From Phaeosaccion multiseriatum (taxonomy: Eukaryota > Protista > Ochrophyta, other classes), in assembly GCA_965112735.1 (NCBI GenBank), contig OZ218951.1, positions 1,922,001 through 1,986,000 on the forward strand: a stretch of 64,000 bases of DNA, in the 5' to 3' direction. Position numbers and translations under genes: made by a program. Positions 6,564-11,840 of the stretch are shown piece by piece; position 1 is the first letter of the stretch, and each line of letters begins with the position of its first letter. Below the pieces are notes generated by a model, which had not been told where the DNA came from, ran no database searches, and saw nothing but the letters and a program-made list of their open reading frames with translations.

Positions 6564-6975
6564 ATGAATAAAGATCCAATTTTCATATAGAACTAATCGA
6601 AAAGGAAAGTCGATCGACTCGCTCGAGAGTAAAATTTAAATTCACAAATGGCACAATTCTCCAAAAAAGACGGATGCGTATTTGGCGGCAGGGAGAGGCC
6701 CGAGTAACCATATAGAAAAAGACATCCGGACATCAGCTTCCATTCCCCCCCTTCTTCACCACTCTCCTCACTTGAGCTCTGCTGCTACTTGTACTCCAGG
6801 AGGGGCAACTGCAGGAGGGCACACACCTCAAATACTCCGTCATTACTATCGGAACTCTCTCTCTCAAACTTTTTGCTTTGTTCGCTGCGTGGTGGTCGTC
6901 GTGGTAAGCAAGGGCAATCGCTGAGGGGGGCACACAGTCAGAGGGCTGGTGGGTTCTACACACAAAGCGAGGCCC

Positions 6976-9900
6976 ATGGGTGGCAGCGGCAGGGGCGGCG
7001 GTCTACTGGTGGCTTTGGGGCTGCTCACTAGCAGCGGCTTCCGTGGCGTCGACGCTCAGCAGGAAGGCGCTGCCATCACCTCTCTAGGAGAGTATCCTGG
7101 CAATGACAGTGAGAATGCTGGCATCAGGGGCCGGGTGTCCTGTACGGACGAGCTGGAGGAGGGAGTATCCATGACGGCCACCTTGACTGGTCTGGAAGCG
7201 GATGCCACGGGAGGTATTCATGTGCATGAAGGTATGCGTAGAGCGGATAGAGAGGAGATGAGGGGGACAAGGTAGGGCAGGGCAGGGCGAGGAGAGGGAG
7301 AGGAAATCTGGGCACAGCGAGGTGTAGTACCTATACTACTTCGAAAGGGAGAGGCAGGCGGAGAAATGCCGGACGGCACCCAGAGCTCACAACCTCTCCT
7401 CCTCTCATCTCTCGTACTCATACCAACGAAACCCTCATCCTCTGCTCGCCCTCGCGCGTCTGCCGTCCGATTCGATCTCCTACACCCACCACACACAAAG
7501 GTCGGTCGTGTGACGAGGCGGGCGACGTGGGGGGCCACTACATGGGCGCTGGCAACGACCAGTGGGAGAGCATCATGTGGACCTCCAATGGAGCTGGGGC
7601 AGCAGAGATAGACCTCTTCGTCCCCACGTTCGGCCTTTCGGGAGACGACAATAACAATGGCATTGGCGGGAGAGCCGTCGTGGTGCACAACTCGGAGGGG
7701 GATCGAGTGGCCTGTGCCGTGCTGAGCCAACTGGGGAGCGAGGAGGATAATGATGTGTCGGCGTCCATGGCGCCGTACCCGGGCGAGGAGGATGCCGGTA
7801 TCAGAGGAACGGTGACGTTTGAAGCGGTCTCCGTGAGGGGAGTTCGCGTCGACGGCCTTCTGCAGGGGTTGGAGGAGAACGAGGTGGGGGCCGTGCGAGT
7901 GCATGCAGGTACGTATGTACGTACGTACATGTATTACTGCTGCCTGTGTTACTCTCTGTCTGTGCCTAGCAAGGAGGAGATGGAGTGGACTTGATAGATA
8001 CTGAGGGCCGCTTTGAGGACACAGAGGGGGCGGGGGGGGGGGATGGTCTGCCTCTGTGGAGCGCTCTTGCAGGGGATCTAACGGACGATGGCAACTCATG
8101 GCGTTCCCTGAAAGGATTGCTGGATGTGTATTGATTATTCTCTAACCCCCCCCCTATCCTCCCTCTCTCCCTACCTGTTGGCCCCCATTCCACCTCATAT
8201 CATCTCTATCCTCCTCCTCCTCCTCCTCCTCCTCCTCCTCCTCCTCCTCCTCCTCCTCCTCCTCCTCCTCCTCCTCCTCCTCCTCCTCCTCCTCCTCCTC
8301 CTCCTCCTCCTCCTCCTCCTCCTCCTCCTCCTCCTCCTCCTCCACATAGGCACATCATGTACAGACCGTGAGCTCATAGGCAACGTGTACACTCCCAACG
8401 ATGCAGACGAGGACCCTTGGAGAGCCGCCACATGGGCGTCCAACTTTAGAGGCGAGGCAGCTCTTGGGTGGTTCGTACCCTACTTTACCGCCTATGAAGA
8501 GAATGCTCTTGAAGGGCGGGCGCTCATAGTCATGGACTCAAAGGGGGCCCGGAGAGCGTGTGGGATACTGAACTATAACCGAGAGAACCTAGCGGCTGAC
8601 TTGGGGGAGTATCCGGCCGCCCCTGCGGATCAGGTCGGGGTTAGAGGGACGGTTGCGTTTGAGGAGTCTTCTCGAGTTGGTGTCATCATGACGGGGACGG
8701 TGACCGGATTGGAGAGCAATGCTACGGGGGTAATCAACGTGCATCAAGGTGGGTGAGGGACACACACACACACACACACACACGGAGAGAGAGAGAGAGG
8801 GAGAGAGGGATGGGGGGGGAGAGAGAAGGGGAGAGGGGGACAGAGAGAGGAGGGGAGAGAGAGAGGGAAGAGATGGGAAGAGACAGAGAGAGAGGGGGAG
8901 AGAAAGTGTGGCGAGTGGTGCAGTGCTCCTCACGAAGGAGCAGCTCAGCGAAACTGTGGAAGTGAAGCACAGCCGCAGCGCTGTCGACACGCGTGCCCCA
9001 GACGTGTATCACGCGTCATGCGTCGAAGCAGCCCCAGCGATGTCGACTCGTGTGACTTGGTGGTATGGTCAGTGCCTGCCTCTCCACGGCAACGCCCGCA
9101 CAAAGGGTGAACCTCTGTCCACCTTTCCCACCTCCGTTTTGTTCCCCTCTCCTCTCCTCTCCTCTCCTCTCCTCTCCTCTCCTCTCCTCTCCTCTCCTCT
9201 CCTCTCCTCTCTTCTCCTCTCCTCTCCTCTCCTCTCCTCTACTCTCCTCTCCTCTCCGTTCCTCTCCTCTCTTCTCCTCTCCTCTCCTCTCCTCTCCTTT
9301 CTTCTCCTCTCCTCTCCTCTCCTCTCCTTTCTTCTCCTCTCCTCTCCTCTCCTCTCTTCTCCTCTCCTCTCCTCTCCTCTACTCTCCTTTCCTCTCCTCT
9401 CTTCTCTTCTCCTCTCCTCTCCTCTCCTCTCTTCTCCTCTCCTCTCCTCTCCTCTCCTCTCCTCTCCTCTCCTGTACTCTCCTTTCCTCTCCTCTCTTCT
9501 CTTCTCTTCTCCTCTCCTCTCTTCTCCTCTCCTCTCTTCTCCTCTCCTCTCTTCTCCTCTCCTCTCTTCTCCTCTCCTCTCCTCTCCTCTCCTCTCCTCT
9601 CTTCTCCTCTCTTCTCCTCTCCTCTCCTCTCCTCTCCTCTCCTCTCCTCCCGTACCCACCCCACTCCTCCCCTCCTCCTCTCCTCTTCTCCCCTCCTCCT
9701 CTCCTCTCCTCTCCTCTCCTCTCTTCTCCCCTCCTCCTCTCCTCTCCTCTCCCCTCCCCTCCTCTCCCCTCCCCTCCTCTCCTCTCACCTCCTCTCCCGT
9801 CCTTTCGCCCCCCCCCCTCCCCCCCCCTCTCCTCTCCTCGTTCAGGCACAACCTGTGCAGACATGGACGAAGTCGGAGAGTACTTCACACCCGACACGGG

Positions 9901-10269
9901 CACCATACCACCGATGGTGTGGGACTCCGACGAGACGGGAGAGGCCCTCATCCGATTCTTTGTCCCTTTCTTTACTCTCACCGGCGATAACGCCCTCGCC
10001 GGCCGAGCGTTGGTGCTGCAGAACGAAGACGGAGAGGGCGTGGCGTGCGGATTGCTCTCCTCCAGCAGGGGCTCACAAGTGGTGTCGCTGGGGTCGTTTC
10101 CAGGCCAGACGAAGAACACCGGTGTGCAGGGGTCGGTTGCGTTTGACGACGTTGATCAGCCCGGGGTGATCTTGGAGGCCTATATCACGGGCCTGGAGGA
10201 GGATGCCACGGGGGGGATACACGTGCACGAAGGTGCGTGTGTGTGTATGTGTGTGTGTATGTGTGTGTG

Positions 10270-10310
<41 letters not shown>

Positions 10311-10442
10311 CGCGTGTGTGTTTTCTTCTGTTAGGAGAGGACGCCAGCAGCTGGACAGTCACCTGTGATCGGTGCTATCGGGTGTATCTTCCCTCTCCCC
10401 TCCCCGTTACCAGCTCAATTCCATTCCCTCCTCCTCCTCCTC

Positions 10443-10478
<36 letters not shown>

Positions 10479-11840
10479 CTGTTCCGTCCTCCTCTCTCTT
10501 CACCACCCCTGTCCCTCCCACCACCAGGCTTTAGCTGCGCCGATGCCAACGGGATTGGAGGTCACTTCACAACCAGCCAAATAGGGTACTCCCCTTGGGA
10601 CACGGTGACGTGGACGTCGGACGAAGTCGGCGAGGCCTCCGTCATCGTCTTCGTGCCCTTCCTCTCCCTCACTCGCTACAACCCCATCATCAAAAGGGTA
10701 GTCGTGGTACATAACTCTGCCTCTACCCCAGTCGCTTGTGGCAAGCTCGCCTACCAGCCCCCTCCTTCTTCCGTACAAGACGAAGAAGACGAGAACCCAA
10801 CAGTATCACCAACCCCTTCCCCTTCCGAGGAGTCCTCCTCGGACCCTTCACCTTCCGATTCATCGGAGGGCGAAACCGACCCATGCGACACCGATTGCGA
10901 CGCTGCCCTGGACGACTCATCTACGGACGACCTCTTCCCATTGACTGCGGCAGAAGCGAGGGCCAAGTTCGACCGTCTTGGGGTGAAGATGGTGTGCGAT
11001 TCGGGCTGTAGAGAGGCTTCGGACGGGTATGGAAGGGGGCACTATTGCGGGGTGTATGGTACAGAGGAAGTGTGTAACGTTTGCTTCACGACGGACGGAG
11101 CTATTCGCTACCTAGGTGAGTGAGTGAGTGAGTGAGTGAGTGAGTGAGTGTGAGTAGAGAGGAGGTGGTGGATATTTGTGGAGTGTGAAAGATTTGGCCA
11201 GTCGAGACAGAGCAAGCAGTCATGGAGTGACGGAACGTTTTGAGTTTTACAGGACGTTGACAACAGAGACTAGACGGCCATCCACTGCAATCGACCAGGC
11301 CATGAACTTCTTCCAGTTTTTCTTCTCATTGGCTTCCCTTTCCCTTTTTCTCTTGTGTGTGTGCGCGCGCGCGTGTGTGTGTTTTTGTACTTGTTCATTT
11401 CTCTCCTACCCTCTTGCCCCACCCGAAACCCCCTGGTGGTACCGACAGCTTCCGACCGCGGGCGCGACCTCTCATGCGGCACCGTCTTAATGTGCGACGG
11501 GCACGCCTGCAGCTCCAGAGCCGTGGCAGATCAGATTGCAGCGACCCCCGACTCTGTGTCAGAAGCAATCGAGCAGACGGACGAGGACAGAGAGGCTCTG
11601 GCGCTCCGCCCTGGTGGGGACGGCGACAGCAGCCCCACAGAGCCAGCGTCAGGTGGAACAAATAATGCGGTGATCGGAGCGGGGGTCGGCATCATAGGGG
11701 TGGCCGTCTTGGCGATGGTCGGTGTGGGGGTGGTGTGGAACAGGAGACGGAGGGCCAGGCTGCAGAGGACTGACGACACGAGAGCATTTCCGGGGGGGGA
11801 TGCGCTGGACTTTACCATACCGGACAGTGAGTTCATGTAG
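6976..11840 (+). CDS. Type I membrane protein with four tandem Cu/Zn-SOD-fold (Cu-only-SOD-like) domains, an S/P/D linker, a Cys-rich domain and one TM helix (6 exons: 6976-7231, 7501-7908, 8350-8748, 9846-10232, 10528-11115, 11449-11840)
   Basis: Signal peptide; repeated 'G.V.F.....GV......TGLE....G.IHVHEG.SC......GGH...GRAVVVHN..G.RVAC' units; TM 'VIGAGVGIIGVAVLAMVGVGVVW' followed by 'NRRRR'. All junctions are GT-AG and in frame. Confidence 0.85.
9145..9840. repeat. (CTCTC)n-type polypyrimidine expansion in intron 3 of the SOD-repeat gene
   Basis: About 700 bp of CCTCT/CTTCT repeats ending at the 3' splice site; source of several spurious ORFs. Confidence 0.9.

Follow-up and report, generated by a model that had tools for sequence, protein, structure and literature searches.

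Do algae possess tandem superoxide dismutases (SODs) of the copper-only (Cu-only) type at their cell surfaces, and if so, what would such proteins do? The question is raised by a six-exon gene of Phaeosaccion multiseriatum at 6976-11840 on the + strand of the window, i.e. the 64,000-nucleotide stretch of contig OZ218951.1 (assembly GCA_965112735.1, positions 1,922,001 to 1,986,000) that was analysed here. By its sequence the encoded protein looks like a real member of a large tandem Cu-only-type SOD family in marine protists. The explanation that we believe slightly more than we doubt is that domain 1 of its four SOD domains dismutes extracellular superoxide on the cell surface, that domains 2 and 3 serve as spacers and that the array grew by exon duplication.

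The exons were spliced in a local script from the window DNA, giving 2,430 nt and a product of 809 aa. All reading frames are intact, with no internal stop, and the five introns are all GT..AG introns in phase 1. The window is eukaryotic DNA with ~58% GC, and its introns are rich in microsatellites. The gene and its product are laid out as follows.

6976..7231, + strand: exon 1, with the start ATG, the signal-peptide-like N-terminus and domain 1's first third, which runs to HVHE-G; donor AAG/GTATGC.
6976-7056 (aa 1-27), + strand: signal-peptide-like N-terminus, short and judged by eye.
7501..7908, + strand: exon 2, the last two-thirds of domain 1 followed by the first third of domain 2; partial Sod_Cu match of 22.5 bits.
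8350..8748, + strand: exon 3, the back of domain 2 and the front of domain 3.
9846..10232, + strand: exon 4, the back of domain 3 and the front of domain 4; Sod_Cu match of 26.8 bits.
10528..11115, + strand: exon 5, the back of domain 4, an acidic Ser/Pro linker and most of a Cys-rich region.
11449..11840, + strand: exon 6, the end of the Cys-rich region, a stalk, the predicted transmembrane helix, a basic tail and the stop TAG at 11838-11840; its splice is placed by GTGAGT..CAG and the phase.
7057..7724 (aa 28-160), + strand: domain 1, crossing intron 1.
7725..8570 (aa 161-295), + strand: domain 2, crossing intron 2.
8571..10057 (aa 296-425), + strand: domain 3, crossing intron 3.
10058..10748 (aa 426-557), + strand: domain 4, crossing intron 4.
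10749..10883 (aa 558-602), + strand: acidic Ser/Pro-rich linker.
10884..11510 (aa 603-700), + strand: region with 10 Cys and no recognised fold, crossing intron 5; a second stalk comes after it.
11667..11738 (aa 753-776), + strand: predicted transmembrane helix, Kyte-Doolittle up to 2.36 over 19 aa.
11739..11837, + strand: predicted cytoplasmic tail of 33 aa, which begins NRRRR (positive-inside).

The four domains are homologous, ~130 aa each, with at most a few residues between the domain envelopes. Introns 1-4 split them at one common place, directly after H-x-H-x-G, so that each of exons 2-4 starts with the last two-thirds of one domain and ends with the first third of the following one. 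Roughly 195 aa of stalk, the Cys-rich module included, separate domain 4 from the transmembrane helix. A first reading of the DNA made from the letters alone (the sequence-only reading) had described the protein as membrane-anchored, and the predicted features agree with this: the hydrophobic helix followed by NRRRR is a type-I layout, which would place the SOD domains outside the cell with domain 1 farthest from the membrane. Apart from the SOD part, Pfam recognised nothing in exons 5 and 6, and no signalling domain in the tail. The Cys-rich region has no look-alike in the Atlas, and the C-terminal 252 aa, compared with all relatives by local BLAST, yielded no more than marginal matches. Both this 10-Cys region and the Arg kept in domain 2 had gone unmentioned in the sequence-only reading. 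Plastid targeting was considered for the Phe after the likely signal cleavage site and rejected, as the SOD domain begins ~10 residues on and leaves no room for a transit peptide.

Are the repeats SOD domains? Pfam Sod_Cu (PF00080) has a cut-off of 28.9 bits, and single window exons reach 15.7-26.8 bits because the introns split every domain. In the Sod_Cu search that the sequence-only reading had proposed per repeat, the isolated window exons thus stay below the cut-off, whereas domains of the gene's upstream paralogue (described below) clear the cut-off with 33.3 and 31.4 bits; PF00080 is also precomputed on most of the relatives. We used three alignments: A1 from the exon products and the paralogue, A2 from whole domains of other organisms only, and A3 from the stretches of the relatives equivalent to exon 2. 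The A1 profile matches more than 100 solved Cu/Zn SODs with a best E value of 4e-10, and the A2 profile reaches 3.7e-13 against the same kind of structures. A hidden Markov model from A2, built without this genome, matches domains 1 to 4 over the full length with E values of 1.9e-40, 3.3e-32, 1.2e-28 and 9.9e-38, respectively. By these searches the SOD-domain similarity of all four domains is far above chance. The closest database domain, P0049:40-168, has 38-44% identity to them.

Two models carry the structural argument, and neither is of a complete window domain: the whole-domain model is that of the database relative P0049:40-168, and the other is of window exon 2, an artificial chimera of the back of domain 1 and the front of domain 2. 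The former, folded with A2, has eight strands, a predicted local distance difference test score (pLDDT) of 97.2 and a predicted template modelling score (pTM) of 0.90. Among its best 50 Foldseek matches all are Cu/Zn SODs, domain II of the copper chaperone CCS or the SOD-like protein EA4, with TM-scores of ~0.8, and VIA-align superposes it on SOD1 with Z 16.8 and a root mean square deviation (rmsd) of 1.9-2.0 A over 118-120 residues. Most of the best VIA-align matches are SOD1 chains of apo or mutant forms with no more than ~126 modelled residues and with loops IV and VII disordered; the modelled domain thus corresponds to the bare SOD core.

Exon 2 folded alone with A3 has pLDDT 92.8 and pTM 0.87, and its only significant PDB match is 5j0f (E 1.3e-6, TM-score 0.77, rmsd 2.8 A), which is human SOD1 without loops IV and VII in the circular permutant P4/5. 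The model shows the window's own residues fitting a loop-less SOD barrel, and it also shows that each exon amounts to a circularly permuted domain. The match to an engineered SOD1 permutant also makes exon 2 a natural case of arrays growing by duplication of "permuted" exons. Taken together, the P0049 domain and exon 2 models support an eight-stranded Greek-key barrel for the repeats. The sequence-only reading had staked its case on this fold, and a barrel is what both models returned. When the two halves of domain 1 (exon 1 and exon 2) were given as separate chains, the pair scored 0.35 against 0.01 for the best control, with contact agreement of at least 96% between the runs and a partner pLDDT of at least 64. 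Of 78 solved complexes, 51 attain a mark of 0.35, and so do two of 108 mismatched pairs; this gives a slight hint that the halves may pair as one domain.

The active-site residues differ among the four domains. Only domain 1 is fully equipped, with the ligands H82/H84/H98/H148, the catalytic R154 and the disulfide pair C89/C157. Domain 4 has H480/H482/H496/H545 and carries Pro551 at the position of the catalytic Arg. Domain 2 has R/H/V/M at the Cu-ligand positions and keeps the Arg; domain 3 has N/H/Y/Q there, Gly at the Arg position, and has lost a D-P-W motif that is typical of the family (see below). The four-His copper site of Cu-only SODs is hence found in domains 1 and 4, while domains 2 and 3 are left with one His each. 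Both disulfide Cys (Cys57/Cys146 of SOD1) are present in all four domains. In none of them does a His/His/Asp set of Zn ligands follow the third His before the next strand. Loop VII is reduced to H-x5-R-x2-C, with 5 residues from the last His to the Arg compared with 22 in human SOD1, and aligning the family profile to tethered SOD1 opens a 17-residue gap exactly at the electrostatic loop. Much of this had been read from the letters in the first place: the complete set of domain 1, the four His and Pro of domain 4, the loss of three of four His in each inner domain, the absent Zn ligands and the loop of ~5 aa after the last His have each held up on re-examination.

How did the array arise? A profile search of the whole assembly found exactly two array loci, namely the window gene and a paralogue on the same contig whose coding region begins ~70 kb upstream (G000:C2 about 1856866-1860660; L007 2866-6660). 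The seven exons of the paralogue code for 869 aa with a signal peptide, six domains arranged as three near-identical two-domain units, and a hydrophobic, GPI-signal-like (glycosylphosphatidylinositol) tail at the C-terminus. Five of its six domains keep the four His, the last one having Tyr at the third position, and all six keep the Arg. Its odd domains share the phase-1 intron of the window gene, and its even domains have another intron, before the last strand. A FastTree tree of 124 domains puts the four domains of the window gene together with the paralogue's three odd ones in a clade of their own (support 0.978), which is why we consider the four-domain array to have been built within this lineage. 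The array would have grown via tandem duplication of phase 1-1 exons, each added exon contributing one more domain with the frame kept.

Sod_Cu matches just one further place in the genome, at about 1580-2700 of L008 (G000:C12 about 1725080-1726200). The gene there has a single SOD-like domain in which Ile, Met and Lys stand where Cu/Zn ligand His would be expected and Gly replaces the second disulfide Cys; it resembles a dead SOD, or a CCS domain II that lacks the chaperone domains. This alga's only copper SOD candidates would be the two repeat proteins, provided that the six-frame search missed nothing.

Similar arrays are widespread in marine protists. An exhaustive profile search, counting representative proteins by E value cut-off, found 1,512 at 1e-3 or better, 678 at 1e-10 or better and 158 at 1e-30 or better. 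No close orthologue was among these relatives, the best having ~34% identity over the four domains. Named sources are the pelagophyte Aureococcus anophagefferens, the haptophyte Emiliania huxleyi, the dinoflagellates Alexandrium margalefii and Yihiella yeosuensis, the cercozoan Mataza sp. and, as a possible contamination, the transcriptome of the choanoflagellate Bicosta minor; further relatives come from many marine meta-omic contigs. Their database labels are hypothetical protein or an automatic "Cu/Zn superoxide dismutase". As relatives occur in transcriptome-derived sets (MMETSP, Trinity, EukProt), the family is expressed in nature.

We analysed the architecture of 204 of these proteins and the residues of 594 near-complete domains. 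The proteins have mostly 2-7 domains, and 17 in the largest; 60 have a transmembrane helix with a tail and 38 a GPI-like end. Predicted surface anchoring is thus typical of the family and supports a role at the cell surface. All four His are kept in 527 domains (89%), 503 of which have Arg or Lys as well, and both Cys are kept in 569, so that the Cu site is under apparent selection across the family. The D-P-W motif in the shortened loop IV is near-invariant (D in 95% and W in 96% of the domains). Given that 89% of the family domains are intact, the dead inner domains of the window protein are an exception, and a pattern of intact ends with a degenerate middle recurs in relatives P0007 and P0012. 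Pro at the Arg position is found in five other four-His domains. The sequence-only reading had proposed an independently built analogue in an alga. The building of the four-domain array within the lineage stands, given the clade and the common phase-1 intron, but the protein is not singular, as its family spans marine protists.

C-terminal modules vary among the members. Relatives P0117, P0190, P0174/P0178/P0181/P0133 and P0141 provide examples of Kazal-like Cys repeats, ShK-like domains (PF01549) and TSP1-like Cys-rich stalks, and in the same set of relatives a WW domain occurs together with a multi-pass membrane domain of the VTT/SNARE-associated type (PF09335). The 10-Cys stalk of the window protein has no convincing match to any of these modules.

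How do these arrays compare with the Cu-only SODs already described? Fungal Cu-only SODs are extracellular and have the barrel, an intact Cu site, the disulfide, no Zn site, a short loop VII and an E110/D113 signature (Peterson and Culotta 2026 review, PMC13017621). [quoted passage not shown] Both classes are called opisthokont-specific plus oomycetes in that review, which does not mention algae, and in our literature searches no paper turned up that describes Cu-only SOD arrays from algae or protists.

With the CSRPs the window protein shares tandem SOD barrels, short linkers, the missing Zn site, the kept disulfide, some Cu-less repeats and an extracellular, anchored position (the last predicted here). 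The Capsaspora CSRP (P0130/P0213, rank 130 of the profile search) was used as a control. Its loop VII has the same length, with 9-11 residues from the last His to the Cys compared with 9 in the algal-type family and 26 in SOD1, and it has a transmembrane helix and a tail like the window protein. Differences are as clear. In the algal-type family the third and the fourth His stand at a median distance of 48, against 57 in SOD1 and 62-77 in Capsaspora. A regular-expression control finds E-x-G-D nine times in the Capsaspora CSRP, whereas the algal-type proteins that were checked lack it. The Cu-less repeats are N-terminal in CSRPs but are the inner two in the window protein, and the anchor is a GPI anchor or absent through secretion in CSRPs, whereas it is a predicted transmembrane helix with a tail in the window protein and GPI-like in the upstream paralogue. 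The algal-type family occurs in haptophytes and in protists of the SAR group (stramenopiles, alveolates and Rhizaria), CSRPs in opisthokonts. The family profile gives each Capsaspora domain at most 19 bits and bimetallic SODs about 35-50 bits, and a search from the choanoflagellate relative P0197 toward the animal CSRPs returned four matches only.

Candida albicans SOD5 (PDB 4N3T) resembles the algal domains in the four-His Cu site, the Arg, the disulfide, the missing Zn ligands, the cut electrostatic loop that opens the site and the extracellular anchored position. It differs in being a GPI-anchored single domain of ~25 kDa with the E110/D113 pair and a full-length loop IV. Its similarity to exon 2 is weak (13.8 bits, E 0.54) and it is not among the best 60 PDB matches of the family profile, while a Capsaspora CSRP domain, again as a control, matches it at E 5e-7.

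The best matches in both sequence and structure are bimetallic Cu/Zn SODs, i.e. human and bovine SOD1 and the Bacteroidetes SodC 7B4O/7B4P. The family profile aligns over the full length to SodC 7b4o with 49.7 bits and scores SOD1 at ~35 bits, and the Foldseek TM-scores of the P0049 domain model to bimetallic SODs are 0.80-0.81. Cu ligands, Arg and disulfide are at the same positions. Compared with SOD1, the algal domains lack the Zn ligands, have a loop IV ~9 residues shorter and a loop VII 17 residues shorter, measure ~130 rather than ~153 aa, and stand in tandem on an anchor. Domains 2 and 3 are like CCS domain II, oyster dominin and the Cu-less arthropod CSRP in having the barrel and the disulfide Cys without Cu ligands, and the P0049 domain model matches human CCS domain II (1do5) with Z 15.7. 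Unlike in these three proteins, the dead domains lie between two that appear Cu-competent, and there are no Cu-chaperone motifs.

Judged on its residues, the window protein is Cu-only SOD-like in an operational sense, with no Zn site and no electrostatic loop. The sequence-only reading had taken these two losses as what defines a Cu-only SOD; both have occurred here, but the E110/D113 signature of fungal Cu-only SODs and many CSRP domains is absent. We read the algal-type family as a distinct type of Cu-only SOD array, nearer to bimetallic SODs by score. A loss of the Zn site independent of the opisthokonts is plausible and perhaps somewhat more likely than not: the profile scores and loop IV speak against opisthokont descent, while the identical truncation of loop VII speaks for it.

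What might the protein do? A cell-surface SOD is the default reading because of the analogy with known Cu-only SODs and the conservation of the Cu site, the Arg and the disulfide across the family. [quoted passage not shown] Domain 1, predicted to be distal to the membrane and with the complete set of Cu ligands, Arg and disulfide, would turn superoxide into O2 and H2O2 outside the cell, at a site expected to be open because loops IV and VII are cut back. Domain 4 may still bind Cu; with Pro in place of the Arg it would be a much poorer catalyst, or a mere Cu binder. In SOD1, replacing Arg143 cuts the activity roughly tenfold or more. Domains 2 and 3 would not bind Cu and may act as folded spacers or chaperoning modules. 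Copper binding, SOD activity, the topology and two roles that the sequence-only reading had proposed, copper sensing and inner domains as spacers, are all inferred from sequence. The six-domain, GPI-like paralogue looks like the bulk enzyme, which leaves room for the window copy to specialise in reaching past the cell covering or in handling or sensing Cu.

Several observations weigh against a surface enzyme as we have drawn it. Only one of the four window domains is fully equipped, while the family as a whole is mostly intact, and this hints that the window copy may have shifted away from catalysis. No E-x-x-D stands at the place of E110/D113 in the window domains, where D-P-W is found instead, and in known Cu-only SODs this pair, a remnant of the Zn site, stabilises the Cu site (PMC13017621). 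The splicing is deduced from the DNA, above all at intron 5, which joins the transmembrane exon, and the signal peptide is short and called by eye. The four sequencing runs that match the locus well are DNA-like, and their contigs, aligned to 6900-8200, run across intron 1 with no joints. The gene model might also be partly wrong, such that the transmembrane exon is not attached and a secreted form ending ..AIRYLGE results, or such that the locus is silent. Transcripts spanning the junctions were not found in the RNA runs, and an in-frame read-through of intron 5 reaches a stop at 11121-11123, only seven bases on. Yet the donor TAG/GTGAGT and the pyrimidine-rich acceptor agree with the other four introns, all in phase 1, the Cys-rich pattern carries on into exon 6, all reading frames are intact, and a stalk, transmembrane helix and basic tail are common in the family. 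We therefore consider such an error very improbable.

The protein could also be no enzyme but a copper-handling or copper/superoxide-sensing surface protein, in which domains 1 and 4 take up and release Cu so as to buffer it, capture it or pass it on to transporters, or report the redox or Cu state through the stalk, the transmembrane helix and the tail. Catalytic features lost in three of the four window domains are kept in the six-domain paralogue, as expected of sub- or neo-functionalisation, and the protein has a unique 10-Cys juxtamembrane module and a cytoplasmic tail. Such a role is rather unlikely in our view: the tail of 33 aa has no signalling domain that Pfam recognises, there is no known partner or transporter, and domain 1 keeps an Arg that is important for catalysis and not for Cu binding. 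A structural, adhesion or recognition scaffold, in which the barrels are stable extracellular modules as in oyster dominin or the Cu-less arthropod CSRPs, would account for the metal-less half of the domains and for the shared inner-degenerate pattern of P0007 and P0012, and SOD-like proteins that lack Cu and have other roles are on record (PMC13017621). It is harder to reconcile with the four His that domains 1 and 4 keep under apparent selection, with the Arg of domain 1 and with the 89% of family domains that keep the Cu site, and we regard it as quite unlikely. Dismutation by domain 1 at the cell surface thus remains the reading that we prefer.

A single algal locus leads in this way to hundreds of tandem, Zn-less SOD arrays, predicted to be surface-anchored, in pelagophytes, haptophytes, dinoflagellates and a cercozoan, i.e. 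beyond the opisthokonts and oomycetes to which the 2026 review limits such proteins (PMC13017621). Their own loop design widens the known range of the SOD template. According to abstracts on the subject, phytoplankton make extracellular superoxide on purpose, and its regulation is described there as mysterious; the protist arrays are concrete candidates for its regulators. A cell-surface SOD is perhaps loaded with Cu outside the cell, which would tie superoxide regulation to copper availability. We speculate, with a good deal more doubt than belief, that the D-P-W arrays of stramenopile, alveolate, rhizarian and haptophyte protists arose convergently, apart from the Cu-only SOD/CSRP lineage of opisthokonts, and that they are the enzymes so far missing at the cell surface which control the steady-state level of extracellular superoxide in marine phytoplankton, with the gene described here turned into a superoxide/copper sensor and not a bulk scavenger. 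Complete, Arg-less and dead sites in one chain, together with the paralogue, form a ready-made structure-function series.

The introns of the gene are packed with microsatellites: (CTC)n at 8209-8343, ~700 bp at 9130-9840 of pentamer-like repeats that are CT-rich and extremely skewed in GC and AT, and further ones at 10236-10320 and 11117-11150, of the types (GT)n and (GAGT)n. These repeats give rise to long spurious open reading frames on both strands and drew the only "RNA" run matches; the RNA runs have 7-9% of the sampled words in common with the locus, probably through these intronic repeats. A word search with the open reading frame covering exon 4 (region 262-389) gave no match. One further observation concerns the control. 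Capsaspora CSRPs are described in the literature as GPI-anchored or secreted; P0213 (Capsaspora owczarzaki CAOG_009424, 2456 aa), named SH3 domain-containing protein in UniRef, shows in its database sequence a clear transmembrane helix, then RRRR, then a long cytoplasmic tail containing an SH3-like domain.

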